Below, in pieces: positions 12,995 to 63,823 of a stretch of DNA of 64,000 bases. The DNA comes from Bugula neritina (Eukaryota > Animalia > Bryozoa). The notes under the pieces were generated by a model, which worked only from the letters and a program-made list of their open reading frames with translations, was not told the DNA's origin and ran no database searches. The position numbers and the translations under genes are program-made. Every line of letters begins with the position of its first letter. The first letter of the stretch is position 1. Location of the stretch: NCBI GenBank assembly GCA_964035545.1, contig OZ037769.1, positions 13,360,633-13,424,632 on the forward strand, in the 5' to 3' direction.

Positions 12995-19831
<6,837 letters not shown>

Positions 19832-30190: not shown

Positions 30191-33100
30191 ATGGAAGATG
30201 GAGAATACACTGTACTAGACTACGTATCGTCTGTAGCTGCGTTTTCTTCAATACTGTACTACGCCACGGGATGGTAGGTTATATACCCATTGTTACACTT
30301 TGAATTCTTATTGCATGTTGATGTGGTGCTGAGTCTAGTTTCAGTTATAGCATTACCGTTTTTTCTTAATATATATGTAACTGCTGAAAAAGCGTTATAA
30401 AAAACATTAAATTTGTAGCCATCTGAACAGTTGTCATCTCTTATAATATTTATTTTGTGACAGGCCTTTAGTATGGAGAGTGACTAAAAGACGGGATACT
30501 GGAATTATCTCCACTTTCCCCTATGTTGCTTTGCTAACCAAGTATGTAGTTTTCTGCTCTGCTCTCTCACACAATTTTTGAAATTTATTTTAATTGCAGA
30601 AGTTGAAATATGTCATTATGTATATATGTGTGCTAATTACATAATTAAAATAATATAACAGAGTTTAGTTGAAGAAATTAACAACTTATTAGATAATATT
30701 TGCAGGATTGATTTTTGCAAAACTATTTGGAATTTTCATCTCATTGAGAGAAGACGTATAAAGTTGAAGCAAAATTACTATTTAAAATATTAAAATGACT
30801 CTTCACTAATTTTGGTATTCATTTTGTGTAACCATATGCCATAAACACTAGAAAAAGGTTATGCTAAATTAGAAAAAAGCATAAAAATAATATATACAAC
30901 TTTTGATTGATTATATTAGTTTTTAAAAGTTCTTGTAGCATAGTTTAATAATATGATATTTTTCTATCAATTTACCGTATATTGGTGCAGTGTTTTAGAG
31001 TGCCATAGTGCGCAAGTTTCAAGTCTTTCAAGGATCTGCTTTCAAGTCAAATAAGTGATCAAGTCAACTCAAGTTATTTGTTCAAGTTTCCAACGCGGAA
31101 TTATTAGCAGTGACTTTAGTTGCATTTAAGTTTGAATCTGATCTATATTTAGAATATTATGATACTTTGAGGTACGTATAGGTTATCAGATATGATCTTA
31201 CCTTATTAGTTCTCTTTTTATGAAACAAAGCTAATATATTCTTTAACATTTTTTGGTTTTAAGATTAACAAAAATTTTACTTAATGCGGTGGGGTATTCT
31301 TATAGTGTTGTACATGGTTTATGGTTATAATTAGTGTAATTTTAATAATTTAAGAGCTCTTTTATCAGCTTAAATTTGCTGCTTTTTGATTTTTATACTC
31401 CTGCTATGTGGTGCAGTAGTATGAGGTCCAGTAGTATGGGGTCCAGTAGTATCTGGTCCAGTAGTATGTGGTCCAGTAGTATGTGGTTCAGTAGTATGTG
31501 GTCCAGTAGTATGTGGTCCAGTATTATGTGGTCCAGCAGTATGTGGTTCAGTAGTATGAGGTCCAGTAGTATGTGGTCCAGTAGTATGAGGTCCAGTAGT
31601 ATGTGGTCCAGTAGTATGTGGTCCAGTATTATGTGGTCCAGTAGTATGTGGTTCAGTAGTATGTGGTCCATTAGTATGTGGTTCAGTAGTATGTGGTCCA
31701 GTAGTATGAGGCCCAGTATTATGTGGTCCAGTAGTATGTGGTTCAGTAGTATGTGGTCCAGTAGTATGTGGTCCAGTAGTATGTGGTTCATTGATTTGTA
31801 AATATATAAGACAAGGTTGTACTAAAGTGCATTGAAAACTACTTGGTGAACTAAAATTAACAATGAGTAGTTGATAGGTGATGTGACATTGGCAGGATTT
31901 CAAAAAATTAATACATTAAATGATTAAATAGCTGCACAATGTTTATATATGACTGGTGGTTTCATATCTACATTATGCTATTCATGTTAAGCCCAGTTGT
32001 TACTTTAGAAGTATAAATTCAAATCTTCAACATATTCAATTAACTGATATTTTTCCCTCTCTGGTACAGATTATATCTGGTAGTTACCATTTAGTAGCAT
32101 TCCTTAACATAACAGTTGAGAAGTAGGGAGCAGCCTATTGGTTAGAGTTTTGCCTTAGTAAACACAAAGTCATGGGTTTGATTCCCAGTAAAGGCCATTG
32201 GTGATGTTAGGAAGAGCATCCAGTCATAATTGCTCCTGTGCCACATATGAATAAGTCCTTAGCTCTCTTTATTATACCCTTTCTATCAGGGGTTCTCACA
32301 GGGATAGTGACTATAAACTTGCTGTGTTAGTTAATGTTTATTATATTTATTTATATTAAATAATAAATAAATAAAAAACAAACCTGTCCATCAGCGGTTC
32401 TGACAGAGATGTTGATTATCAACCCACACAAGTTTTTCTACCAAGTACGTAGTGTAATGCTTAGTTTAGGAAGAGTAACGCAGAGTGCCCAGCTCACGCT
32501 ATAGGTTACTTTTTGTTCAAGATTGCATATAGTATATATCCATGTGCTAAAAGAGAAGACAACTTTGATAAAAGTTAACATTACATGCTTCACTGTTATT
32601 ATTTCACTTGACTTTGTGGTACTCAGGCTCTAAGTTGGGTCACAGTCTGAGTTTTAGACTCAGTTCTTTACATTCAGTTTTGGTCCTTTCTGAAGTATGT
32701 TTATGCATTTATTTTATAGTTGTACTGTTTGGACTTTGTATGGAAAGTTAGCGGACAACTTTGTGTTAAAGTTGGTTAACTCTGTTGGTGCTTCACATCA
32801 GATAGTGTATATTCTCGTTCTATATTATTATTCCAAAAGTAAGGTGAGTGTCCTTCCCTACCCTTGGCAATGTGAAGTTACTCAGGTTATGTTGTGTGAA
32901 GTTTAAACAGCTCCACGGCTGGCTAAATGGTGTCTGATTGAAACTATGGTGAAACTTAAAATGTGATAATTTTAGTTCATAGGATTGATATGGGTTTGTA
33001 GTTTAGTGTCCAGGTCAAGCAAACCCTTAGCTAGCAATATGTGTAACTCAGGAACTTTGGATCTTTCTAGAAGTATATTCAGTTGTTACGTAATGTTGAC

Positions 33101-46596: not shown

Positions 46597-49500
46597 TCAT
46601 GTTCTGTAGAGCTCATTTTCAATGAGTTCTACTTTGGGATTAGCGTCATCTGCAAGGCTAAAGAAAATAAAACGTGTATAAATACAAACATCACGTATCT
46701 GCATGTATAACACTGCATATATACTTGTATATTAGTACAAGCGTACTTATATGTTTATTGTACAAGACTATATATTATGTCCTTGCATAATACTACATGT
46801 ATAAAATAGCATATGGATTTGTATAATACTATGTATATACTGGTATGGCACTACATGTGTACATGTATAACACTATGGAAGATGATTTACTTTGCTGAGT
46901 ATCTATAGTTGCAGATTTCAAGCTATCAGGGCAACCAATTGAGGGAGGGTTATCAAACACCCTCACCGGCAAACAAATTGCTCACTATCCACACAACTAG
47001 GAAAAGTAAAGCAACTACTATTCAATGCATACCCAGCTGTATTTTCATCATCCTCAGCTAAATAATAGATGTTGTTATCCGTAGCACCAACAGCTTGGTT
47101 GTTGCGGGGGCTATCGTAGACGCTATCGCTATGAACAATAGCTGTGTTGTTTCTTGGGCTATCATATAAGCTGGAGCCTCCCACTGCAGTGTTGTTGGTT
47201 GGAACTTTGTAATCTGCAGGCTCTGTAGACTGTGGTTCTACCTCTTGGGTCTGCGTTCCTTGGGGTACACTGTAATACGTATCGTCTATTTCGTCCGCTA
47301 AGTGATATACTTGGCTATCTACAATCAAACAACATGGCGTCTCCAGGGAACTCAAATGCAGCTAACACCAAACTGAAGTTGGGTTCAGTGAAGTATTTAG
47401 CCTCAGAACCAACTATTGGAATCCTGAGTGTTAGGAGTTGTCTAATCTTTTGATGCTGACAGCTTTCTCTTGTTATATGGTTTTTTTGTAATATTAAAAT
47501 TGATCTTGCAAATTTTCAATTGAAAATAGTCAAAGGCATTTGCTATCAATTTATTATTTCCAAGTTTTTTTGCATATTGTTTTGAATGACAATTCATTGC
47601 TATAATAGTGAGAACTAAACCTAAACAGAGACTACCTTTTACTACTAAGTTTCAACTATAAACTACATACTTAGTACGCAGTTTGGTAGTAACAGAAGTT
47701 GTCTTCACACAGCGAATACATTGCCTGGAACTACTATAATGTTTAGTTAAATGATCTCTATGATCGTTTACTCACCTTCATTGACAAGTCTCTTAGTTTC
47801 CTCACAGTCGCCATTATCAGGGGCAGAGTAAATGTGATTATCCGATGATTCATCGGGCTCACACTCACGTCTGCAGTTATTGGCGAGATCGCTGTACAGG
47901 TAGATGCTCGTCTCAGGTAAATCGTATATGTCGCAATCTGCAGAATTTACTTTTTAGGTTTTAAACTTATTGTTTAAAGTTATGTTATGTATCAATCATT
48001 CACTACAGAAGTGAATTTTTAGAGATTAAAGCTAATAGTCTAACAGGTTTGCATTGTATTATAGAAATAGTTTTGGTTGTCTTTCCAAGCTTACATGAAA
48101 AGGAAACAACTGATGCAGTAAAAACTGCTAACATTATATGCCTGTATTATATACTACAGATATTATTATATGTTTGTATTACTCATTGAATTTTTTTTTG
48201 TATTATGCTTTTATTTATTATTACATTGTGGAGATTGTTATCTGCCTGTATTACACATATTAAGCTTGTATTGCATGTACTCAATGACATTAAATGAGTT
48301 AAATTACCAACTTTTTCAAGGCATAACTCTATAGTAATTACTTTCACATGCAGCTATAGTATACTACTCACCTTGAGCCCCAGGATCTCCGTTGGCACCT
48401 TGCAGATGTGGCTTTTCCTTGTTTTTATAGCATTGCTTAGTTGGTTTTCTAAAACAGTAATATTTCGAAATGAGCACAGAATATTTAAAATAGAGTATCA
48501 CTTAAATTTACAAATTTACCAGCCACTTATTTGCATTACTATTTTATGTTACTAATATACTAGTCTAATAATTATATTAGTTTCTTTAATGCACGCATTT
48601 GTATGTTTCGTAAATGTAGCAAGTATCAAAATCTCTAGAAATAGAAAAAGTGTCAAGTAACAGTAAACTTTAAAATCTTCTATTATAAAATACCAAATAG
48701 TAAAATAATATAATTTCTAGCTATTGTTGCAATGTAGCGGACAATAACAGTAAGAGACCAAATAATAAATCTAACAGCCTGTGATAATGGAGGTATGGGA
48801 ACAAAGCATAAATGCATGGACAGTTTTCTAAAAGCATAGAGAGGGAATAATGGCTAGAAATGTTATTGAGAGCATTTGAATCTTTGATGGTGTTATCTCT
48901 TCTACAATTACACTGTAAGTAAAAAAACTTTCGATGAATACTGAATACAGCTATTCATAAAAAAGATGTAGTAGCGTTTAGAAATTGATAGATGAGCCAA
49001 TTAAAAAGAGATCAATCAAAAACCAAATGCCAACCACAACAATCACTGACCTCTTTCTTCTTCTGAGGAAAATCACAATAACCACCACGATGATGATTAC
49101 AACTACTAATGAGAGGGTAACTCCAACACCAACTCCAACTGAGCTGCGTTTAGCTGAAGATGTGGGAGTTGTGTTATCTTCTCCTATGCCGTGAGCTATT
49201 TTAGCAAATAAACACAAAGTTTTATGATGAAGTTTAGAACACTGTAGCTAGTTAGTTAAAAACTGATAGCAAGAAATGGAAAATTGTTAGCTCACAGCTG
49301 GTGCACCAAAAACATGAATATATGTATGTAATGTATTGTACCCTGGTATACCCTGTGTATTGAAAAAAGAAGCTTTACGTAATTTTTTTAAATAAAATGC
49401 TAGAGAATTTAAAATTATCTGAAAATTAGTGATATATGTTATAGAAAAACATTTTATCAAAATATTTCACTGCTAAAATTTGCTCCTTTCTACCCTGTGA

Positions 49501-52500
49501 GTAGAAACAAGCTGCAGGTAAAATTAGACAGCAGGTAAAAATAGGTTACAGGTGGAAAAAGGCTGCAGGTAAAAATAGGCATACGAGGTAAGATCTCTTT
49601 TGTGCATTTTTCCTTAAAACCAGAATAAATGTTGTGTAGTTTTGGGCTAATTAGTAGAGTTTTCCATTGTGCATGGTGAAGCATTTGGTTTACCATGTTG
49701 AAAAACTACCAATCAAAGTATTTGTTTAAATTTAGAAATTTATCAGGAAAGACTTTGCAATAAGATTTTTAAACATTTAAATAAACATAGTAACCAGAAT
49801 GAAGAGAAAGAAGTTGGAAGCATTTAAACTGAGAAGCATAAATGTGTTGCAATCTGAAACTGTTAGGTGACTAAGTGTAAAGGTATAATACTATCAAACT
49901 TTAGTGATTTACAGGTCAACATGCAGGAGAAGAGTGAAGAAAAACATTGTCTAGACTCTAGGACATTGGGATACTACGAATGTTACAATTCACCTGTACC
50001 TGTGATATTTGTTATCGCATTTTTACCTTCTGTAGTTTGTGAACTGATGTTGGATGAAGTTTGAGCTAGAGATATAAAGACAATTTTCAATGTTTCATTA
50101 TTACATGTAGATATACAAAACATTATTGCAATGTATAAGTACACATCATATGTGTCAAAATCTGGAGTTTCGAAGTAACTAAAATTTAAAGGTACTACTA
50201 CCAAGCTTCCGTGGTGTATAAACAGCACATGGCATGCAGGTGAAGAGTGAAGAACAGCGTTTAGTTTAAAATAATGGTCTATTGAAAATGTTACAGTTCA
50301 TTTGTACCTGCAGTATTTGTTATCGTGCTTGTACCTTCTGTGATTTGTGAACTAATGCTGGATGAAGTTTGAGCTAGATATATAAAAATATTTTTTTAAA
50401 ATTTTTATCGAACAAGCTGCATATTATTACAATCTATGTAAATAAAAATAATAATCTTATAATATTTTGTCTATGTAAATACTGTATATCTTAATGTAGA
50501 TGAATATTGTTGCAATCTGAATTAACTAAGCGACCGAGATTCAAAGGTGGTACATACTGTTAAGCTTTCATGATTTACAAACTGCACATGGCATGCAGGT
50601 GAAGTGTGAGGAAAAACGGCGTTTAGAACAATGAGTTACAGTTCACCTGTACCTGCAGTACGTGTTATCGTGTTTGTACCTCTTGTGGTTTGTGAAATGA
50701 TGCTGGATAACATTCGAGCTAGAGATATAAAACAGTTCAGTATTGAATCTATAGCAACCTGCATTTTGTTATAACCTATGTACGTGTAAATGTTATTATA
50801 ATATATTATGTACATGTACATATATAATAATATACGTACATATATAATAATATACGTACATATACATGTATAGTATTATATTATGTAGATATACAAAATA
50901 TTTTTATAATATAAATACATGTACTTACTGAAAAAACTTAATAAAATATTTGTTGGAAATAACAGAACACTGTTATTATGTCTAAATCTAGTGACTAGGC
51001 AAAAGCTATGAAATCTTTCAAAGTGTATGAATATTATAAAAAGTTATGTAAAGTCATGAGATCACATTTGCTCTTAACTAACAACTGCTAAGAGTGGCAA
51101 AACAGTGGTCTAGGGGTTAGAGCATTTTCTTAATAAGAATTAAATCATGGGTTTTAACCCGACAAAGGCCAATTAAAATGGTGGTGATGTTAGGAAAAGC
51201 ATCCAGTCATAATTGCTCCTGTGTCACATCTGAATAAGTCATTAGCCCGGTTCAACAAAAAACCTTTTCCATTAGGGGTTTCTCACAGGGATAGCGACTA
51301 TAAACTTGCTGAATTTTTTTTATAAGACGCAAAACAAAGAAATCTGTTGTATTAGTGCTGCAAAAGTACTGCTATACAATCTGTATCGCATACCTACGGC
51401 ACTGCTATCAAAAAGGGCCATTCATAGCGCTTAAAGTCTACCCGTGTGTAAATTTCACGCAGCTCACCTGTATATTTGAGAAGGAAGCCTGATGTTTCAC
51501 CGTGAGACCCAGACACGAACCGCAACACCAATTCTCGCCTTTTCGATGCCTTGAATGTGATAGTTTGACCCATAAGGCCAGCATCAACATCCTGACATAT
51601 CTTGGTCTCGTTTGCTCCCCATATCAACAAATAGTCATAGCATGGTGTGTAATTTTCCAGATCCAAAACCACAAAGTGAATGTCTACTGCTGACACATTA
51701 GTTAAGGTTAGCCGTGAATTAGTGTTGGATCTGTAATTACTTTGCCCGTAGTCTGAGTGACTAACTATATAGCCTGAGGAACTTGCTCCTGCATTCAGCT
51801 CTTTTGGTAGTGAAATACCGTCTATGTTTATTGCGGCGGCCACTAGAATATAAAGTTTTATGATAACTAAACAACTAGCATCAAAATAAAAAAATAGATA
51901 AAATACAGAAGATTATTTATATACAGTATAATAGTACCTAGCTTATGTATATACAGTATAACAGCGCCTAGCTCTTGTATATACAGTATAACAGCACCTA
52001 GCTCATGTATATATACAGTATAACAGTACTTAGCTCATGTATATATACAGTATAACAGTACATAGCTCATGTATATATACAGTATAACAGTACCTAGCTC
52101 ATGTATATATACAGTATAACAGTACATAGCTCATGTATGTACAGTATAACAGTACATAGGTCATGTATATATACAGTATAACAGTACCTAGCTCATGTAT
52201 ATATACAGTATAACAGTACCTAGCTCATGTATATACAGTATAACAGTACATAGCTCATGTATGTACAGTAGCTAATAATGTACTTACCTCTGTATGTGAG
52301 ATTGAACATGTCGCTGGTTTGCATGTACTCGGAGTAGAAATTTATGTTTAGGGAAGTCGCCAGCTCATTGAAATAGTATATTTCCTCAAAATTGCTTCCA
52401 TCACATAATTTGTCACCTCTGTTGTTTATTTGTACATAAGATACTTCATTGTTGCAGTTAGACCTTGATTTACAGTTATAAGAACATTTCAGAGTAAATG

Positions 52501-53706
52501 TTTCTTTTGTTAGCCCAAACCAGGAAAATTCTGGAAAACCAGTAAGTTTCAGCGTACAGTTGACTTTGTCTGGTGGTTGAATGTATGGACTCACTATTCC
52601 ACCTTCAATACCAGCTTGAACCACCTGTGATGAGCTGTCACACATTGTATAAACAGCACCTGTGAAATATGACACAATTATATTTATATTGGGCTTATAT
52701 AAAATGCAGTGAATTCTGTCAGGAATTGACCAAGTTAATTCTATATATATACTACTTTTCTTTATTGAAACCAATCAATATCTTAAAATGCTTTAAATAA
52801 ATATATTTACTCATTTATTTATCATTTTACTTCATTTAAACGCAATGCTAAATAAAAATAACTAAATTTTATTACCCTTAACTGAAAATATAAAATTGGG
52901 AGCTTTCAATGATAGGTGTTGTATTGGAGAAACATAGAACAGCCTGTGTTTTAGATGAAAAATATGGCAAAGGAAATTTTAACTTGCATCCCAAACCAAA
53001 ATTGACAGAAATTTGTAAACCGCCCAGCCTAATGAAATTTCTTAATACTGAAATTAAATGGAATGTCAGTAGCTGTGGTAAACGAATGTTAACAGCATAT
53101 AGCAAGATAATATGTGGTGATGAAATAAAGTAATATGTAGCCACAGATAACAACATTTCCATACATCTGTGAGGATATATGCGCTGATTGAGCATTATTT
53201 AGCCTAGTACAGTGTACAGCCTGCTATGTTGATGATTAAGAAATTACAAATTCACAGTAACATTACAACATAAATCTTATTTGATCTACTTACAGAGTAC
53301 AATATTAGGACAGACTGAAGTTGACAAACATTGATTCTAGCAAGTTGCCAACTTTTAATGAGCTAAAAAAAGTAGTTATACTTCTAACTATAAAATGCAG
53401 TAATAAATAAGAAACTCACATTTACACTTTTTTAGTCAATAGAAAAATAAAATAATGTTACCGATGACTCATGATGAATCAAAGTCACAATTTATCATGA
53501 CTCAGAAGCATGACTCATGCTACCGATTGTAAACAGGAAGTAATGACTCATGGTACGTCTGCAAACAGGAAGTCAGTAAGGTAGCTGCTAGGAGGGAACT
53601 TACCACCAGCGTCACATCTTGCTATGTCAACATTTCCGAGGAAGCTAAATGCAATTAGAAACCACCAGACTACCCTCTCAGTTTGATTCCTTCTGGAGTT
53701 CTCCAT
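46597..53706 (-). CDS. Type-I membrane receptor A: signal peptide, 2 CUB domains, Ser/Thr stalk, TM, YxxP-rich cytoplasmic tail (~590 aa)
   Basis: Exons 53706-53604 (signal peptide), 52659-52288 (CUB1), 51842-51468 (CUB2: GYIVSH...DLE..CYDYL...ICQ...FVS....SGFLLKY), 50718-50653, 50373-50308 and 50065-50000 (stalk), 49195-49051 (TM VGVGVTLSLVVVIIIVVVIVIFL-RRRKR), 48448-48372, 47937-47776, 47318-47033 and 46657-46597 (..ELIENELYRT*). All junctions are phase-compatible. A probable 5' UTR exon ends at 54835. Confidence 0.85.
49900..50735 (-). repeat. Triplicated ~310-345 bp unit, each containing one 66-nt stalk exon plus intron flanks
   Basis: Three copies of tatatctctag|CT..CAAAC..CAGCAT..TTCACAAA..ACAG..GGTAC..CGATAACA..ACTGCAG|GTACA followed by a shared intronic TCTTCAC..CCTGCATG. 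Confidence 0.85.
51095..51310 (+). mobile_element. tRNA-derived SINE, family 1
   Basis: CAGTGGTCTAGGGG head, core TGGTGATGTTAGGAAAAGCATCCAGTCATAATTGCTCCTGTG and tail CTCACAGGGATAGCGACTATAAACTTGCT. Confidence 0.8.
51917..52270. repeat. 29-33 bp minisatellite (TATATACAGTATAACAGTACCTAGCTCATG, ~11 copies) between the CUB1 and CUB2 exons
   Basis: Direct observation. Confidence 0.95.
53464..53573. promoter_or_regulatory. Candidate intronic enhancer: AP-1 / ETS / FOX motif cluster
   Basis: TGACTCA at 53465, 53498, 53511 and 53544; TGAATCA at 53475; TGTAAACAGGAAGT at 53528 and GCAAACAGGAAGT at 53561, all within 110 bp. Confidence 0.6.
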
Positions 53707-56514
53707 TTCCAAGTTATGTAATCTGACCTAAGGGTGAAAAATCAGTAAATTCCTTTAATTTTCTCAACTTTTAGATTAAATTATATCTGAAAAGTTGGTG
53801 TTAGCACAAATTGTTTCAGATGCTTATAACTGAACAGAAGACATGAACTGTGATTCCACAATAATGTGGTTTGATGAATGGAATTGTATCATGATAGGGT
53901 AAAAGTCATAACAAGTGAATCATGGTTAATAAGTTTTAGTGCAGATGTACTACTATTCTTAGATAAACTAAATATAAACTGAGGTAGGTGTAAATTCACA
54001 GAAATTAAACAAAACATTATGTATTATAGGCAACAGTCATTATATATACTTTAGTTGAACATAAGTTTTTACTATTGTCAAGGTGTGGGCCATGGTTTTC
54101 TGTTCTGAGGGTAAAAATCAAGAAATAGCTACAAGTTTCAAATTTACAACATGTGCAGTTTTGAAAGTTGTCCAATTGAAATGGCATTGTTTGCAGATGT
54201 TGTAGAATTATTGAAAATATGTTTTATTGCAAGTAGGACATGCAAACCGATTGGTTAGTACGGAGAAAGTGAAAACATTACAAACATAAAAATGTTGCTA
54301 TATAATTATATAGCTGAAAAAATTTCACAGCTTTTTCTCTAATAGCTTGTATAGGTACAAAACTTTAATGCAACTTATGATTATACCACTGCAGTTGTGG
54401 CCATTTTAGACAACGTCTAGCATTTATTAATAATTAAATTTAAACAGAGGCAATCGGATTTTCCCAACCTGCGATGACTACCAGCTCATAGAACATAACA
54501 AGCACCCAAACATAATATGTCTTATAGGAAAGTGCAACACTACAATGGTAGTGGTATAAACTCCTAAGCTGTATTTCATGGGTACAAAATAAAAAGTTAA
54601 AACGTCACTAGGCACACAGCACACACAGTATTTATTACTAAAAAACCTAAGGCTAAAACAAATTTGCTAATTTTCCCTCAATTGCATATTGATGTTTGAA
54701 AAACTAAGTGGAAGCAGCTGTTATCACTCGATTCTTAATCTGGTTAAAAAGGGTTGGTTGAGATGGCTACATCCAGGGAATAGTAACAACTAGTAGTACA
54801 AGAATTAACTGCAGCGATAGAGTTAGTTACTTACCAGTGAGCAGCACACAGTGACAGGACTGTCAGTAGTCAACTCAGACTACGGAATGCATGAATGTGT
54901 TTAGTAGCTGATTATAGCATATACAATAAACAAATAACAGTACAGGTCAAGCTACAAGCTAGCTAACTCGCTAGTAGTTACTAGCTGAACTGACCTGTAT
55001 CAACTGCCTATCATGCAGTCGAGATTCAATGACAATAGCCTCATTGAGTTTGCCTAATAACTCGGGATTAGAGGTTAACTAACGGTTTTTCAATCTGTGT
55101 TCATGATTCGACGTCTTTAACGGAGCGTGACGTAAGCTTGTGCAATAGTAGCAAGAGTTATAATGGTAAAAACTATTCAGTGCTGAGGAGCTGAAATGAC
55201 AAATTTGTTATCTAACTGCTATTATAATTAGACTAAAATTTATCGTTGCAGCAGAGAAGCTTTGAATGAAAAATGTTATTCATGGTTAAATTGTTCAGCT
55301 GAAAATTAGAGGTCGGTCGACGCAATGAAAGAACTGCATGATGTAAGTGCATGGTAGCATAACTCCCAATAAGTTTATTATAAATTAGTGTTGAGTGCTA
55401 CATTATCAATAATAAAATACTATACGAAAGCATTAAACAATAATCCTTTGTCTCAATAAAGGTGAAACACATTTTTAAATATCAGCAATACCAGCCTCCC
55501 AAATAAATGCACAATATTTTCTTTTCATAAAGCTGCATTATAATGATTTCAATATAGCTCCTGATTAAAATGTGTTCCATGAGTAATGTAGGTTCTAATA
55601 AGAAAGTCTTACATTATAACTTCAATATACAGGGCTGTAAGAACCACTCTGTCATTATAGTACACACAAGGTAACACACCATTCACTTCTATTACCTGTA
55701 TACAATTGTTCATTACTATTGCATTGTAAGTGGTCGCAAAGTGTCTCTTTTATAATTTGACACTTCCATGAATTAGTGTGCATTATTTTGAAAAAGATAA
55801 ATTTGAAATATCATATTATGTGAGTTCTTGCACTGTTTATTGCATAAATGTGTATAAAAATATTTAAGATAACAACATATACAAAAAGTTTATAGCATCA
55901 TTAAACTCAGGTAGTAAAATTATGATGCAAAGTTATTAAAAATACACAAATTTGGCGGCAGTCTGTAATAAATGTGTTTGCATAAAAATCAATTTTTATA
56001 TTTTAGACTGCATGAACTCAAGAAAAAAAACAAACTCCATAAATAAGTGAATGCCCAATTATATTAAAAAATGTATAATTTTCATATCAGTTATAGTGAG
56101 TTGTTTTGGTCAATTATCATGCTGATGTCTATATAAGTGTACAAAAATATATGTTAGTAATGTTAACCTACAATAAAGCTAAGTAATGGCAAATATATAA
56201 AACAATAGTTGAGCTTTTGAACAAATTTCTAAAAGCAAAAATAATATTATGATATGAAAACATACTTTGCTTAATTATATTGATCTATTTTTGATGCACA
56301 AACACTTGAACATGAATTAGAAAATGTGGTGAAGTTGGTAAACCACACGCTTCTCACTTTAGGGGGTGTGGTGTTAGAACTTCGGCTAAGTCAGGATAGA
56401 CACAGCCGAGAACTTTTGCATTCTGTTTTGCTGTTTAGGTCAGCACCTAAAATACAAACAAACCTGCATAGAGAATTTCACTAGCTTGCACACAGACACT
56501 TGTAGTGTTGAGAT

Positions 56515-56587
56515 TACCCCGTGGTATAATGGTTAGCGTGTCTGCTTGCAAGTCGGAGGTCCTGGGTTCGAACCCCAGTGGGGGCAA
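56515..56587 (+). pseudogene. tRNA-like sequence (pseudo-tRNA or head of a second SINE family)
   Basis: A box TGGTATAATGG, B box GGTTCGAACCC, perfect T stem CTGGG/CCCAG and TTTT just downstream. The anticodon stem and the first acceptor-stem pairs are defective; TGC sits at the approximate anticodon position. Confidence 0.65.
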
Positions 56588-56769
56588 ATATTTTATAACT
56601 CTCCTAAGCAACTGCACGAGAAGGCATAAAAGTATCACATTCTCACCGAGGTTGTTATGTGTCTATCGAATTGATGATGAATAGGCACCTAAAAATTTGA
56701 TGCTAAGCTTTGCATATTGAAGATAAAATAATAGAATAATTTAACTAAAGTATTTTTATATTGTAATAT

Positions 56770-56935
56770 GCACGAGGGAGGTCACGGGTTCGAGTCCTGA
56801 CGAAGGCCATTGGTGATGTTAGGAAAAGCATCCAGTCATAATTGCTCTTGCGCCTCATTTGAATAAGTCCTTAGCCCGATTTAACAAAAACCCTTTCCAT
56901 CAGGGGTTTCTCACAGGGATAGTGACTATAAACTT
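56770..56935 (+). mobile_element. tRNA-derived SINE, family 1 (5'-truncated)
   Basis: B box GGGTTCGAGTCC followed by the family core and tail. Confidence 0.8.
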
Positions 56936-57172
56936 TCGTCAGTATTTTTATTTTGTAATCTATTGTCATGCGTGACTGTCCAACGAAAGTTTTAGTTGCA
57001 GCAACAGCTCTAAACGTATGAAAATGATGACTTATATTATAAAAAAACATATTGCTTGTATATGATGCAAACTTTCTTGTACTACATCTATATTAATTGG
57101 TAAAGTATTTAACATAAAAACAACATTTAAAAAAACTGTCTTACCGTTTTAGTGAGTTCTTTGCAACATGGC

Positions 57173-60100
57173 CTAATTATTTTCATACACGGTTTCTGGT
57201 ACATCGTATATATCTTTGTCATCATCTGAAACAGGTTTGTTGCTGACTGAAATCTCATATATACCGGAAACGGGTCTATTGCTCTGTGGGAGGTCATAGA
57301 TGTTGGAACCATCTGCTGCTTCTCCCTCCTTCAAATCCCTGGAGCTGACCTCAGCATACATAGCCTGTGCACCTGATGGACCTGGATGTGGTACTCTGTC
57401 ATACCCAGGGTTCCATGCTCCAGTATCATAACGTATCTCACTGTCTGGTAAGAAAAATCATAAACTTTTAGCTATAGCCTGCAACTATTGGCTGTTTTAA
57501 TTCTTATTTATTATCTGATTGTCTATATAGTAATAATTTGTTTCATTACACATGAATAAAGGGGGGGGGGGGGAATCATTTATTATATCATAGTTGATGC
57601 TTTATTTATTCAACATTCAGCACATTAATTTATTTAGTTAATTATGCAAATGATTTGCTTTATTATGTTTTATTACAAGTATACCCAATACCTCTACAGC
57701 AGTCTTCCTCTTTAATAGTATAGTATTCATCATAAGTGGCGCCCTCTGTGCTCGCACGCTGGGAGTTGTCCTCAAAATGAAGACTGACTCCTGCTCCCAT
57801 TATGCAATACTCACTGCTTGTTCCTGGCGCTGTGTTTACATATAATACCTTATCATCTAGAAAAGAGTTAGCAGTGCTTTATTAATAAAGGTGATATAGT
57901 TTATTACAATGTTAAAAAGAAGCAAGAAGCTATCATTAATTCAAGCTCAATAGGAAGTTGGTAAACTAGGCTAGAGGCAATAAAATGAACCAACAGGAAT
58001 CTATCTATAGAACAAAATTAAGTTTCAAAATTGAAACCAGAGGTATAATTAAAATATTATTCCCAATATTAAAATAGTAAGTAAAATTGGAAGCTTATAC
58101 TAGATACAGAAAACAAGCATTATAATTGTGATCACAAAAAGTTGTAAAGCATTAAATTGAAGTCATGAAGTATATTTTGTGACAACAAAAATTGCACATA
58201 ATATAACACTTTTTGCTTTGCTTAAGCTTTTAAAATTTGATTTCATATTTAAGTTTGGAGCTACTGTGTATTATCTATAGGGCAGACAACTTCATTTATA
58301 ATAAACACAAAGTAGTTTAAACTATAGCTTATATTATATAGTCAGTTCTGTAAGAGGTACCTGTTTCAGCTGATCCATTTGTTTGAGTGTTCGTTACTGG
58401 CCTAACAAAATATATTAAAGATCTTCAAATGATTATACCGTTTGAATACGTAAATGAATAAAAGTAAGTTATAGTCACAGCAAATTCATTCATGTCAAGT
58501 CAATGGCTAACCAAGTCAATTCAAGTTACATGGTAAAAACAAACATTTTGAGTGAAGCACAACTCAAGCCGATATCATAAATTTGAGTCAAGTTAATTTA
58601 AGTTGACTGACAACTAATAATTAACTAAATCAATACACATTATTTATTTAAAAGGTTACATAACGCGTTGAATAGTAACACAGTTTTAGCAGCTTGAATA
58701 AAAAATGAGTTTTACTCTTCAAGTCTGCTCATTAAAATTTAGGGAGCAATTGAAAATAAACAATATATCTAATAATGGCTAAATGCTATCCAATTACAAT
58801 AACTGTTGAATTTTTTCAACAACATTGAATAATTTTGACTAGCCGTTATTAAAATGTTGTTGCATCAGTATAACAAAATACTTTTAAAATTTGAATTGAC
58901 TAAACTTTAAAACCTAGCAAAGTCAATAAAAATTTCAATAGTCATGCAAAATAAATTAATTGAGTAGCCTAATACTTAAGTCAAGAAATCTCAAGCACTC
59001 AAGTCTGCAAGTCATTGAATCATTAATATAACTTTGACCCAGATTTATATCTTTGTTATATTTCATTTGCTATTGTCTTGAGAAAACTGTTACCGCAAGA
59101 GAAAATCAACCATTCCTAAGCATGGCTTCTAGCATGACTAATGGATATTATACATTACATAGATAATACAGCACAATAAATATATATGTCACTGCATATA
59201 TTACATATATAATACTACTGCATATTACATACATTTTACTGCATACTACATATATGATAATATAATACTGCATATTATTAAATGTAGTGAAAATCATTCA
59301 TTTATATTACTACTTTGGAGTTATTTTCTCCCCATACTTATAAATTCCATATTACATCATTTTGCAACCTGCTTTTTTTACCCATAATCCCTCTCTTTTG
59401 TTCCTGTGTCTTCATTAAAATAAATTGTTGAACTATATTGCTAAACTGAATAATCTATTTACATCTAAGCAAATCAACACATATTACATAATATATATTT
59501 CTGCATATATTACATATTACATACATATTATTATTTCACTGTTTATTTAATTCACTCAACTCACTTTCTCTTCCTTCTCAGATAAAAGATAACGACAGCT
59601 ATGACCACCACTACCAGTAATGAAATACCAACTATAAGACCTGCTTCCAGGCTGTTCAGTCTTTCAGCAAGTGGATCTTCTGCTGAAAAAGAGATAAACA
59701 TGATATATTACAGTGGTGTACCATCATTTACATAATGTGTTAGCAACATACATTTATTATTATAATATCTTAGTGATATATTATCTTGATATATGACCAA
59801 TATATCAATAATATAATATCACGCAAGTTTCCTGTAAAAAACCCTGGTGGAAAGGTTTTTTTAACGGCTATATAAAGAACTTATTCATATGTTGCACACA
59901 GTAAAATAATATGTTAGTGATATATTATTGATAACGTGATATAGTCTATACTAATGGTATATCATTATCAGCGAGATATTTTCATGTGTTATACTCGTAG
60001 AACATGAAATAACATTGAGATAGTTCAGTGCATAACGTATTATATTATAACAGTGTACAGTTGCTATCTACAATATAACAATATTGATATCTACTTTATA

Positions 60101-63100
60101 TAGCAATATGCTGAAGCAAATTAGCAGTCAACCTCATTAGGTATAATTTACACCATTAAAAAGCAAATAAAAATAATAAAAAGCAAATTATTATTAGCTC
60201 AAATGTTAACAGGAAGTAGTAAAACACTCAGCATAAGCTGACCAACAGTAGCAGAGGCGACTATTAGGGGTCAGAGCCCTGGCTTAAGGGACACGAGGTT
60301 TGATCCCCAGTAAAGGTCATCGGTGATGTTAAGAAGAGCATTCAGTCATAATTGCTCGTTTGACACAACAGACAACAAATCTTTAACCTGCTTAAAAGCC
60401 CCTTCCATATATAGAGTTTTCACAGAGGTAGTCTCTATAGATCCAATTGAGATCTTATAAGGGTGTTCTTACAAAGATAGTGACTATAAACCCATGGAAG
60501 GTCTTTATAAGCTGACCAACTAAATAAAGCAGCTTGACTGGAAGTGGTAAAGATGAGTTACCTTCATTAGTTGTGATGGAAGTCAGCTTTGTTGTCTGAC
60601 TGTTATTTGATGAGTTAGTAGAAGGACTTGTAGGTGTAGTTGTGGATGTATTACACACTATAGTAGGAGATGTGATTGTAGTAGTGCTTGTAGTTGAAGT
60701 TGTTGTAGGGACCGTAGTACCAATAGTAGATGCTGTAATCATAGAAGTAGAAATAAATGTGGTGGTAGTAGATAAATCCCGCACCAAAATATATTTAAAA
60801 GCTTGAAATTTTTTTTACATTATTTGAAAGATCCATTTTATCAGGCTATTAGATTTTATTTTATTTATTTTACTTATTTAGATCTAATTTAAATTATGTA
60901 ATAAGATGCATATTTTGCTTAATTTTTGGCGAATAAATATATCAGTTGTGTGTAAATACTATAAATAGGCTGTAAGATTACATTTTAATATTATATTAAA
61001 AGCTAAATTTAACTGAAAAATATCAAATAAAAACATTTGACCGTATTTGTCTGACAATAAACCTTTAATGCTACTAACCTGCATACTTAAATAAAAACCC
61101 TCTACGTTGGCCAGTGTTATCAGAATAAAACTGTATAGATATACTAAAACTACTGGATGCCGTGAACGACCTCCATGTCTGTAGGTAACTGCTTGCATTC
61201 TGGTGTTGGCAGATTTTAGAAGAAGCAGCTCCTGTTATTATGACATAATCATAACATCGAGAATACTCTTCCAGATTCAAATCAACAAAGTAAATGTCTA
61301 CTGTCACAACATTGGTAAAGGTTAGGGTTGAGTTAGTTTTTGATCTGTAATCAAGTTGACCATAGCCTGCGTGACTAACCACATAGCCTGAGGGCTTACG
61401 TCTGGCATCCACCTCTATTGGTTGTGGTGAACTTTCTGCCTCTATTACACTGGCCACTAAAGAGATATATTTTTGCACATTAACAAGGTAAGAAAATTTC
61501 ATTGTGCCCATAAATATCAACTCCTATTCCAACCATTGAGAATAAAACTTTATGCAAGAAAATTTAATGCCAAACATATTGCAATTTAATTGAAATCAAA
61601 GCTCTTAGTTTATTGAGTTTACTCTTCAATAATTTTTTTTCTCAAAAGACCTTCCCTGCTTAAGCAATTGTGAGAGAAATATATTAAGTTTAGTAAATCA
61701 TATTTGTTCAAATTATTTCAGTTGCCAGAGAAAATATAATTAGGAAATATTGCGGCCACATATTTAATTAAAACCAAGCAAAGTAGAGAATTTATAAATT
61801 TTGCTTTAAAATATTTCATATTAGAACTATAACAAAATGCTTTAACTCTACATTTCTTCATCAAGGCAACCAACTAGATAGTTTATTTTTTATTTTAAAG
61901 ATAACCATATTATAGTGTTGACCAAACTATTGTAAGATTGAAAAATTCTATCAATTGTAATATAAAATAAAACATTCATTTTTGCATATGTTCCTCATTT
62001 AGACTAGCCTAGTATCTAGAATAGTGTTTTAAACCACTATAAGGCTATTTTCAGAAATATAGCCTAGCTGCATGCTCAGGTCTAACATGGATGCCTTACT
62101 TAAAATACTATTTTTTTCTACTCACCTCTATAGGTGATATTAAACCTATCAGCAATTCTCATGTAGTCCGAATAAAAGTGCACATCTAGCGACGTCTTTC
62201 CTCGAACATAAACGGATGTATTGTCCTGCGTGGCCGGGTCACAAATGCTGGTATCTGAACCATCTACTTTTATATAGGCATTCCCAGTTTTGCAGTTCGA
62301 AAATCCATTTACACAATCATACATGTATTGGCAAGACAGAGTAAATGTTTCCACTTTGAGTTCAAACCAGGAATATTCTGGAATACCAGTAAGTGTCAGC
62401 GTGCAGTTGACTTTACGTGCTGACTGAATTTGTGGACTGATTATGCTACCTTCAGTACCAGCTTCAACCCCCTGTGGTGATGTGTCACACATTGTATGCG
62501 AAGCACCTGAAATCAAACATCGCGTGGGAGTCTTAATAAGACAAAAAAAGATTAGAAATATCAAAGGCATCTATATGATACAACTGACAAATTATAAAAA
62601 GTATACATTATAAACTATGTTACTGGCCCCAAATCAATAAACCAGGATTCCCAAACGTAGAAGTTTATTGAAGGTTATACTTCGTGTTGAACTTGCTGCA
62701 TGGTAAACTTGCTGATAAACTTGTTGATAAACTTGCTGGTAAAAACTCTTGGGTCCTTCATACACAGTGCCAGTAAATAATATATTGTCAAACCAGTAGA
62801 TTAATAAAATAGTAAGTACAGTTTTGTTAAAGAGTACTGCCAACTGAATGTATTGAGTTTTTTGAGTGTTTATATGCTCTGATTGTTGTTACTGTACCAG
62901 GTAAAAACATATTGCATAAACAACTATTGTCCCTGAAAAATACCACAATGATTGTGTCCCAAAACATAGTAAACATTCACTGGGTAGCCTCAGGGTACCA
63001 ACCCAGCCCGGTAGAGGTAGGGCAAGAATGACAGCCACCCCAACTACAATGACCTAACCACAATTTTCTAATAGTCAGCACAAGGTAGATGAGTAATGCC

Positions 63101-63823
63101 TGCTGACGTATGTCACCTAAACATAGTTAGGTCATTGTGGGCAACACACAACCAGTTGCAAACTATGTGAGATGTTTTACTACATTTAGGTACAGCAGAG
63201 ATATAGAAAAGCTTCAATTGCCTGAGCCGTTTAATTAACTCTATGAATTTTGATTCTGAAGAGCAAATTGAAATTCTATGGAGAACATAACATCTTTTAG
63301 TTATTTCTATCATCCAAAACACAGGCTTTTACCTGTAACTTCTTAGACACGTTTAATACCAAGTATATGTACTTCAAGACCACAACTTGCACTATGCATC
63401 TAACTCAAAGTGTTACATATTTTCTCAGTATAAAAGTAACTTGTATAATAATCAATACATGTTTGTTGAAGCATATAAAATACACTCCAGTATGATCAAA
63501 AAGAAAAGAATTGCAAATCCTTTATAACTACTTTTCTTTAATGTATACATTTAAACTAGACGCAAGATAAATCAGAAGCTTGCAGACATTCTTGTAGCAA
63601 AAAAAGTTGCTCTCTTTCTACATGTTGCTTTAAAACTGAGTTATAAAATAACAAAAATACAAATAATATGTTTATGATTATGTAATACAACTAATATCAC
63701 TAGCTCAACAAAATCCAACTAGCATGTAAGGATATTTTACATACCATTAGCACCGCACTTCATTATATCCAGGAAGAAGGTAAAGAAGATGAAAATCCTG
63801 TATGTGTTTTTCTGTTTAGTCAT
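57173..63823 (-). CDS. Type-I membrane receptor B, paralogue of A: signal peptide, 2 CUB domains, Thr/Ser stalk, TM, multi-tyrosine tail (~534 aa)
   Basis: Exons 63823-63745 (MTKQKNTYRIFIFFTFFLDIMKCGANG), 62506-62126 (CUB1), 61456-61079 (CUB2 ..LEEYSRCYDYV..ICQ..FYSDNTGQRRGFLFKY), 60732-60562 (T-rich), 59682-59565 (TM LIVGISLLVVVVIAVVIFYL-RRKRK), 58401-58361, 57856-57692 and 57444-57173 give 1605 nt in frame, with the same exon phases as receptor A. Confidence 0.85.
60256..60490 (+). mobile_element. tRNA-derived SINE, family 1 (diverged)
   Basis: GGTTTGATCCCCAGTAAAGGTCATCGGTGATGTTAAGAAGAGCATTCAGTCATAATTGCTC and a tail ending GATAGTGACTATAAAC. Confidence 0.7.

Follow-up and report, generated by a model that had tools for sequence, protein, structure and literature searches.

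Genes A and B, two adjacent same-strand genes in a 64,000-nt stretch of the genome of the bryozoan Bugula neritina (the window), belong to a tandem cluster of five that constitutes a real, lineage-restricted family of cell-surface receptors. The window covers positions 13360633-13424632 of OZ037769.1, here called C5, a chromosome-scale sequence of an AT-rich genome of 216 Mb. The encoded proteins are type I glycoproteins and represent a variant, put together from other modules, of the CUB scaffold-receptor kind known from vertebrates (DCBLD, CDCP1), with predicted roles in signalling and recognition. Gene A occupies 46966-53706 of the window on the minus strand (ATG at 53706, stop codon at 46963-46965), and gene B occupies 57176-63823 on the same strand (ATG at 63823, stop codon at 57173-57175). 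Their common layout consists of a signal peptide, a divergent CUB domain (CUB1), a canonical CUB domain (CUB2), a serine/threonine (S/T)-rich stalk, a transmembrane (TM) segment and an acidic, tyrosine-rich tail encoded by a first cytoplasmic exon (cyt1) and a tail exon. An initial annotation made from the DNA letters had described this pair with its shared architecture and exon phases, and the pair proved to be real.

Organization of the cluster

A genome search with the gene A CUB1 exon returned five tandem copies on the minus strand, in the order E-D-C-B-A. A CUB2 profile run against the whole genome returned six tandem copies, two of them being CUB2 exons of gene C. The expectation of the initial annotation that the cluster might continue past the right edge of the window was borne out by three further genes, C, D and E, which were modelled in the adjoining 60 kb, with positions counted on from the window (Table 1). 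All searches and folding were performed exon by exon, and exons were joined in scripts only to follow frame continuity and to count residues.

All splice sites of the models of genes A to D are GT-AG. Exons are of phase 1-1, the TM exon alone running from phase 1 to phase 2 and a small exon after it from phase 2 back to phase 1. Gene A exon 1 has three GT sites of compatible phase (G at 53615, 53606 and 53603), one of which was taken as the donor, and an RNA-type contig (record 7 of sequencing run X1) reaches 120 nt upstream of the gene A CUB1 exon. The stalk region of gene A (49986-50725) holds three tandem 66-nt exons of phase 1-1 at a spacing of about 310-345 bp. These may be cassette exons that vary the length of the stalk; clear RNA depth was seen only for the last copy. 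The exon order and phases of the initial annotation were retained, whereas its model had missed the small exon between TM and tail and had overlooked the three-exon stalk of gene A.

The CUB1-CUB2 intron of gene C contains, at approximately 78200-86085, a full-length Gypsy-type long terminal repeat (LTR) element in the orientation of gene C, with long gag-pol open reading frames (ORFs) and, at each end, ORF fragments of the LTR that match one another. A relic (89511-92025) composed of the first exon of gene A and upstream DNA is situated between genes C and D. Since this relic is homologous to window positions 53551-56766, the duplicated unit spanned the 5′ end of gene A together with a B-type gene. 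The orphan copy of the gene A signal-peptide exon within it (89511-89672) retains 85% amino acid identity. The paralogues B, C and D are separated by a synonymous divergence (dS) of 0.1-0.3, and their introns are 73-80% identical.

The CUB pair

Aligned by BLASTP, genes A and B share 45% identity in the CUB1 exon (E 5e-43) and 47% in the CUB2 exon (E 2e-34); the framework motif strings quoted in the initial annotation were recovered in these alignments. Both CUB2 exons score above the gathering threshold of Pfam PF00431 (A 22.5 and B 27.6 versus 21.4 bits). Among PDB structures, the best alignments of the CUB2 profile are with cubilin, MASP-1/3, PCPE-1 and C1r, the cubilin CUBs being closest by sequence. 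CUB2 of B, C and D keeps the three acidic positions of the calcium site, namely Glu (in LNLE), Asp (in YDY) and Asp (in YSD). In MASP, C1r, cubilin and PCPE-1 these positions coordinate Ca2+ and clamp a lysine of the ligand.

The CUB1 exons matched no Pfam family. A first structural model built on five sequences had a predicted local distance difference test score (pLDDT) of 63 and already matched CUB structures. An AlphaFold (AF2) model built on an alignment of 28 sequences reached a pLDDT of 81.9 and a predicted template modelling score of 0.78. When this model was compared with the PDB by Foldseek, the first 43 matches listed were all CUB domains, with template modelling scores of 0.55-0.66; those listed include domains of MASP-1, neuropilin, spermadhesins, C1r, Neto2, Kremen, cubilin and PCPE-1. 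Language-model (Atlas) feature matches all fell in CUB clusters (0.91-0.95), and hhalign of CUB1 with CUB2 gave a weak score with an alignment that extends over nearly the whole domain. On the strength of the modelled fold and the language-model features, CUB1 is identified as a divergent, family-specific CUB domain that has six cysteines and carries an extra, Cys-rich loop modelled at low confidence. The ectodomain thus carries the two CUB domains originally proposed, of which CUB2 passes Pfam and CUB1 is recognized as CUB by its modelled fold and language-model features.

Stalks and cytoplasmic tails

Stalks across the family comprise 36-205 amino acids (aa), with serine, threonine and proline (S+T+P) making up 41-68% of the residues. 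To judge from sequence, the stalk is probably O-glycosylated and the tail probably disordered. In each protein a single TM helix is followed by a basic stop-transfer segment and by a short juxtamembrane part from the predicted small exon. Genes A to E encode between 3 and 14 cytoplasmic tyrosines each and no enzyme domain; no Pfam domain was found in the cytoplasmic exons. This agrees with the earlier description of non-catalytic tails with more than 10 tyrosines each in A and B, for which cyt1 and tail exons together provide 13 and 12, respectively. The net charge of the tail is -16 to -21 in A-D and -2 in the 62-residue modelled part of E. In gene A, YxxP accounts for 6 of the 14 tyrosines, an enrichment over shuffled sequences with p<5e-5. 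Genes B and D carry YDLP, YDVP, YEIS or YEIP and a C-terminal YENN, and C and D have one VxYxxI each that resembles an immunoreceptor tyrosine-based inhibitory motif (ITIM). Other tail tyrosines fit the YxxPhi pattern: YSDL in A, YAEV in B and YCTI in both C and D. The SH2 domains of Crk, Abl and Nck prefer YxxP, those of Src-family kinases YEI and that of Grb2 YxN; the B. neritina genome contains at least 25 SH2-encoding exons.

Joining of the membrane segment to the tail

In all five genes the TM exon ends in phase 2 and the first tail exon starts in phase 1, so that a direct canonical splice between them runs into a stop. Such a splice was rejected for each of the five genes because the frame is lost and a stop is reached within 1-8 codons. 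The introns between TM and cyt1 were therefore searched for AG/GT-flanked exons of 3n+2 length, and a predicted frame-restoring small exon was found in B and C (41 nt), D (35 nt) and E (47 nt). Each of these exons in B-E follows a good acceptor, and its last letter is a G that fills up the conserved Asp codon with which the tail opens. With the small exon included, complete open frames of 534 aa (B), 651 aa (C) and 501 aa (D) were obtained, with GT-AG at every junction. In gene E every exon between CUB1 and the cytoplasmic exon, both included, is open, and the phases join in frame, the first and last exons of E lying outside the model. In comparison with the public draft assembly, the E small exon differs at one of its 45 full-codon sites, within a region that is about 14% diverged. 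For gene A there are three candidates, 48399-48448, 48759-48778 and 48694-48716, in the last of which the second haplotype of DNA run X14 has a 1-nt indel; with 48399-48448 gene A also has a complete open frame. Skipping the TM and small exons together keeps the frame. The idea that the tail exons form an independent protein was discarded, there being no Met in that frame in either tail exon of gene A. The small exon matters in practice, as automated or by-eye models without it predict tail-less proteins.

Gene A is covered by exon-only contigs from runs X1, X12 and X13, which belong to three studies, and its introns have zero depth in them; DNA run X14 covers exons and introns alike and is heterozygous in gene A. 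RNA-type contigs confirm three splice joints of gene A. The CUB1-CUB2 joint (52288/51842) is a canonical GT..AG junction in X1, X12 and X13, and the cyt1-tail joint (47776/47318) is likewise canonical, whereas the TM-cyt1 joint (49051/47938) lies one base off a canonical splice, with one extra G (47938) kept. This extra G is the expected product of a preceding small exon that ends in G; the letters between the two sides of the joint are not known. The RNA-type contigs are 5-10% diverged from the window in exons, and further sequence comparisons suggest that they derive from a sibling lineage. Zero RNA depth at the 50-nt candidate of gene A is weak evidence, because contigs of sibling-lineage exons fall near the 90% identity cut-off.

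A further RNA contig, at 47885-48072, was considered as a longer first tail exon or an upstream acceptor in gene A. All frames above 47938 are stop-rich, and the contig is best read as unspliced RNA. A word search with the first tail exon of gene A for RNA-derived ORFs across the TM-tail junction gave no match, a search with its tail exon matched only one genomic allele, and a metagenome scan for conservation of the gene A intron gave no match.

Distribution of the family

In a search of 1.84 billion representative proteins the CUB1 profile obtained 26 matches at E<=0.001. All except three are exon-sized ORFs, mostly of 110-205 aa, from Logan or ENA/TARA marine contigs (SRR25569774 and a TARA metagenome among the sources), and none of the matches has a name given by its source. 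Most of the exon-sized ORFs end in '...YRG' or a close variant, which corresponds to the phase-1 exon boundary of the cluster. The remaining three (P0008, P0018 and P0020) are long and repetitive-looking, with odd, fragmentary Pfam matches, and were not accepted as relatives. Close relatives also occur in JGI metagenomes, in the public draft GCA_010799875.2 and in sequencing runs under the same organism label. The annotation of that draft contains unnamed models for an E orthologue (628 aa) and for part of a D-like gene, and the one literature search made, on 'Bugula neritina' with 'CUB domain', yielded no functional description of these genes. Searches with the two tail exons of gene A found no relatives outside the B. 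neritina complex. With five tandem copies and this narrow distribution, the suggestion of a lineage-specific, expanded family is sustained.

Two distant relatives lie on the plus strand of C5. One (10228191-10231922) has CUB1-like, CUB2-like, Cys-containing and TM exons, and the other (10258467-10266785) combines a CUB1-like and a CUB2-like exon with one of 215 aa that contains 16 tyrosines. The additional exons of both had no Pfam match, and a reading of the Cys-containing exon of the relative at 10.23 Mb as a sushi domain was dropped for want of Pfam support.

Selection and divergence

Among B, C and D the most conserved parts are CUB1 and CUB2, for which the ratio of nonsynonymous to synonymous divergence (omega) is 0.14-0.42. 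The first tail exon is the fastest part (omega 0.7-2.3; 33 nonsynonymous and 4 synonymous changes between B and D), and the last exon has an omega of 0.5-1.05. Contig L026 of the public draft is collinear with E and D at 84-87% identity. In this comparison E had an omega of 0.02-0.06 in CUB1, CUB2 and TM (dS about 0.16) and of 0.47 in the stalk, D had an omega of 0.56 in CUB2, and a D-like CUB1 of the public draft has frame breaks. The tail exon of gene A was compared with an allele of the sibling lineage (L024). Divergence was 4.5% in the exon, where 10 changes are synonymous, 6 are nonsynonymous and no tyrosine is lost, and 13.5% in its flanks; read from sequence in this way, the Tyr-rich frame of the A tail is certainly translated. 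Purifying selection acts on the CUB domains, on the A tail exon and on the TM and small exons of E.

Public DNA labelled 'Bugula neritina' (the draft, JGI metagenomes and Logan contigs) differs from the present assembly by approximately 13-16% in non-coding sequence, both at the cluster and at an unlinked locus. That locus lies 3.2 Mb away, and a Logan contig of the same run set matches it at 86.5% identity. As a divergence of about 14% recurs there, it is probably not specific to the cluster, one unlinked locus having been compared, and locus-specific hyperpolymorphism was rejected for now. A metagenome scan for the baseline divergence returned nothing. Run X14 is heterozygous at the cluster, with some variants in common with the other type, a pattern that fits sibling lineages with shared polymorphism. 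The published B. neritina draft of 214-221 Mb is highly heterozygous (PMC7576161). Population analyses must allow for the gap of about 14% at neutral sites, seen at two loci, between public 'Bugula neritina' data and this assembly.

Table 1. Exons of genes A and B and positions of genes C, D and E, counted from the first letter of the window (cyt1, first cytoplasmic exon).
Feature	Position	Strand	Description	Basis
Gene A exon 1	53607-53706	-	ATG and signal peptide, phase 1 end	ORF and splice-phase analysis
Gene A CUB1	52288-52659	-	372 nt, phase 1-1, 6 Cys	RNA joint 52288/51842; 45% identity to B; CUB fold
Gene A CUB2	51468-51842	-	375 nt, phase 1-1, canonical	PF00431, 22.5 bits; covered by exon-only contigs
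Gene A stalk copy 1	50653-50718	-	66 nt, 22 aa, S/T-rich, phase 1-1	AG/GT and phase; RNA depth weak
Gene A stalk copy 2	50308-50373	-	66 nt, phase 1-1	AG/GT and phase; RNA depth in X12 only
Gene A stalk copy 3	50000-50065	-	66 nt, phase 1-1	Clear RNA depth in X1, X12 and X13; loose end at 50067
Gene A TM	49051-49195	-	145 nt, phase 1 to 2; juxtamembrane part, hydrophobic helix, RRRK stop-transfer	Contig coverage, joint at 49051
Gene A candidate small exon	48399-48448	-	50 nt, phase 2 to 1, G end	Pattern search and frame check; no RNA depth
Gene A cyt1	47776-47937	-	Phase 1-1, acidic, 4 Tyr, YDLP and YSAP	Contigs over 47776-47936; joint 47776/47318
Gene A tail	46966-47318	-	117 full codons past the split codon, 9 Tyr, 4 YxxP	RNA joint at 47318
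Gene B exon 1	63745-63823	-	ATG and signal peptide, phase 1 donor	Homology to signal-peptide exons of C and D and to public spliced model P0003
Gene B CUB1	62126-62506	-	381 nt, phase 1-1	Homology, frame and CUB fold
Gene B CUB2	61079-61456	-	378 nt, phase 1-1; triad LNLE, YDY, YSD	Pfam CUB, 27.6 bits; alignment to MASP-1 and cubilin
Gene B mucin-like stalk	60562-60732	-	171 nt, 57 aa, 68% S+T+P	Frame and composition
Gene B TM	59565-59682	-	118 nt, phase 1 to 2	Frame check
Gene B small exon (predicted)	58361-58401	-	41 nt, phase 2 to 1	Conserved in C and D; good acceptor
Gene B cyt1	57692-57856	-	165 nt, phase 1-1, 5 Tyr	Frame check
Gene B tail	57176-57444	-	7 Tyr: YDLP, YEIS, YDVP, C-terminal YENN	Frame and motif analysis
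Gene C	69517-87368	-	CUB1-CUB2 intron hosts a Gypsy-type retrotransposon; CUB2 exon present twice; other residues at three tail Tyr positions of B	
Gene D	92247-99214	-	Closest to B	
Gene E	102234-106220 and beyond	-	Mucin stalk of 205 aa; 62 cytoplasmic residues modelled, 3 of them Tyr	

Other features of the window

The CUB2-stalk intron of gene A contains a short interspersed repeat (51037-51430) with related copies at 56811-56951 and 60322-60428. In DNA and RNA-type runs alike, its summed contig depth exceeds that of the surroundings by a factor of 10^3 to 10^5. Scans of the region for tRNA genes (ARAGORN) and Rfam families, the repeat included, found none, and the loose ends of the repeat resemble the 3′ arm of a tRNA. 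Elsewhere, 31370-31903 is a long, coding-like tandem repeat with three open frames and units such as 'GPHTT' repeated about 30 times, and 14442-17311 (minus strand) holds exons of an aldo/keto reductase (PF00248, 24.1 bits) broken by long (CA)n microsatellites.

Discussion

The cluster is most like DCBLD1/2 and CDCP1. It is a member of neither, nor of the neuropilins or NETO proteins, because it contains no LCCL, F5/8-C, MAM, LDLa or CDCP1-type domain. CDCP1 (Trask) is a single-pass glycoprotein whose only domains are CUB-like and whose short tail carries tyrosine motifs phosphorylated by Src-family kinases. The cluster proteins share with it the single membrane pass, an ectodomain with CUB-type domains only and a tail with tyrosine motifs. 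They differ in having two CUB domains rather than three CUB-like ones, a mucin stalk and a different tail, and no CUB exon matched the CDCP1-specific Pfam models at E<=1.

The vertebrate receptors DCBLD1 and DCBLD2 (ESDN) are likewise type I and non-catalytic; they begin with a CUB domain and have several YxxP motifs in the tail. Gene A has six YxxP, and the motif is not enriched in B-E. The cluster proteins have a second CUB and a mucin stalk instead of LCCL and F5/8-C. The absence of these two domains from the cluster, as first proposed, was confirmed by genome-wide searches. LCCL (PF03815) matches occur on contig C284 only, with none in the cluster, where the exon models leave no room for one, and none of the 37 genome matches to F5/8-C (PF00754) lies at C5:13.40-13.47 Mb. 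The DCBLD1/2 tails contain seven or eight YxxP motifs and bind the SH2 domains of CRK and CRKL after phosphorylation by Src-family kinases (Fyn) or Abl (PMC6029619). Between DCBLD tails and those of the cluster there is no detectable sequence relation.

Neuropilins and NETO1/2 also begin with CUB-CUB, and neuropilin a1/a2 and Neto2 are among the best structural CUB1 matches listed. Unlike neuropilins, the cluster proteins have no F5/8-C or MAM domain and only the S/T stalk between CUB2 and TM. The tails of neuropilins and NETO proteins are short and serve PDZ binding or channel modulation, in contrast to the long, acidic, Tyr-rich cluster tail. The CUB2 domains can be aligned to those of MASP-1/3, C1r/C1s, cubilin and PCPE-1, and B, C and D share their Glu/Asp/Asp positions. 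Those proteins differ in being secreted proteases, enhancers or a peripheral endocytic receptor.

We consider it somewhat probable (about 0.55) that A-E act as scaffold receptors without catalytic activity, much as DCBLD1/2 or CDCP1 do. The CUB pair would bind a protein ligand outside the cell; in B, C and D the contact would be made by the Ca2+-coordinating acidic triad of CUB2, as in MASP, cubilin and PCPE. Clustering of the receptor would then expose the tail tyrosines to kinases of Src or Abl type, and phosphorylated YxxP/YDxP, YEI and YxN motifs could recruit adaptors with SH2 domains of Crk, Src-family or Grb2 type.

Several observations weigh against this account. Ligand binding, phosphorylation and adaptor docking are deduced from motifs and sequence. 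CUB2 of A and E does not have the third acidic residue of the calcium site. Outside gene A the YxxP counts (two each in B and D, one each in C and E) are not significant by shuffling, the modelled 62 cytoplasmic residues of E include only 3 tyrosines, and the first cytoplasmic exon shows no detectable constraint among B, C and D. The link from TM to tail depends on small exons that are predicted from sequence; the sole RNA joint between TM and cyt1 of gene A (49051/47938) is out of frame if nothing lies between its two sides, and the RNA evidence comes from a sibling lineage with 5-10% divergence in exons.

A possible, though doubtful, alternative is that the proteins are endocytic or cargo-capture receptors, with the CUB pair taking up ligand as cubilin does and the tail tyrosines serving mainly as YxxPhi sorting signals for AP-2. 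The proximity of CUB2 to cubilin CUBs and the several YxxPhi-type tyrosines in A, B, C and D would agree with such a role. Most tyrosines, however, stand in acidic YDxP, YENN and YEI contexts typical of kinase and SH2 motifs, and six YxxP in gene A are far above chance. Endocytic and scaffold roles are compatible and not exclusive. It is less probable still that these are auxiliary subunits of ion channels or other receptors, as are the two-CUB proteins NETO1/2, SOL-1 and LEV-10, and we regard this as quite unlikely. Two N-terminal CUBs on a single-pass protein and the presence of Neto2 CUBs among the structural matches are in keeping with it. The LDLa module of NETO, SOL-1 and LEV-10, on the other hand, had no counterpart as an exon or Pfam match in the gene models, its place being taken by the mucin stalk; the tail, acidic and rich in Tyr, does not resemble that of NETO, and no NETO sequence matched above other CUB proteins.

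Another reading is that these genes encode polymorphic allorecognition or symbiont-recognition receptors of a colonial animal, with diversifying ectodomains. The cluster is tandem and dynamic in copy number, as shown by the second CUB2 exon, the inserted retrotransposon and the relic exon. B, C and D also evolve faster than E, with an omega of 0.56 for D CUB2 against the public assembly, and a DNA run is heterozygous in gene A. Nevertheless, the CUBs are the most conserved parts among paralogues and those of E are near-invariant, while the neutral divergence of about 14%, being present also at an unlinked locus, resembles a split between sibling lineages rather than balancing selection. A constrained ectodomain with a fast tail is the opposite of the hypervariable allorecognition pattern. 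The analogy to invertebrate allorecognition clusters drawn in the initial annotation was therefore left without support by the dN/dS comparison among paralogues and with the public draft, in which omega of the CUB exons ranged over 0.02-0.56 and the first tail exon was the fastest part, and this explanation appears improbable. Finally, some or all copies might be decaying pseudogenes with relic tail frames. Splicing TM straight to the tail loses the frame in all five genes, gene C has taken up a Gypsy element in one intron, carries its CUB2 exon twice and has lost three tyrosines relative to B, and the D-like CUB1 of the public assembly is frame-broken. Against these stand the complete open GT-AG frames of B, C and D (and of A with its candidate small exon), the open and phase-compatible E exons, the purifying selection on the A tail and on the CUB, TM and small exons of E, and the transcription and splicing of gene A. 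Decay of some or all copies is very improbable as an explanation, and for the family as a whole it is already unlikely.

A far more speculative and rather remote reading is that the cluster forms a bryozoan-specific surface recognition system. A conserved 'anchor', E, and the fast-turnover, calcium-site receptors B, C and D would bind variable partners (neighbouring colonies, settlement cues or the Endobugula symbiont) and would signal through adaptors of Crk, Grb2 or Src type, while the variable stalk and the skipping of the TM and small exons might yield membrane-bound and soluble forms. Bryozoans are colonial, and their surface-signalling and self-recognition genes are almost unexplored; the cluster provides a concrete, testable family of such genes.

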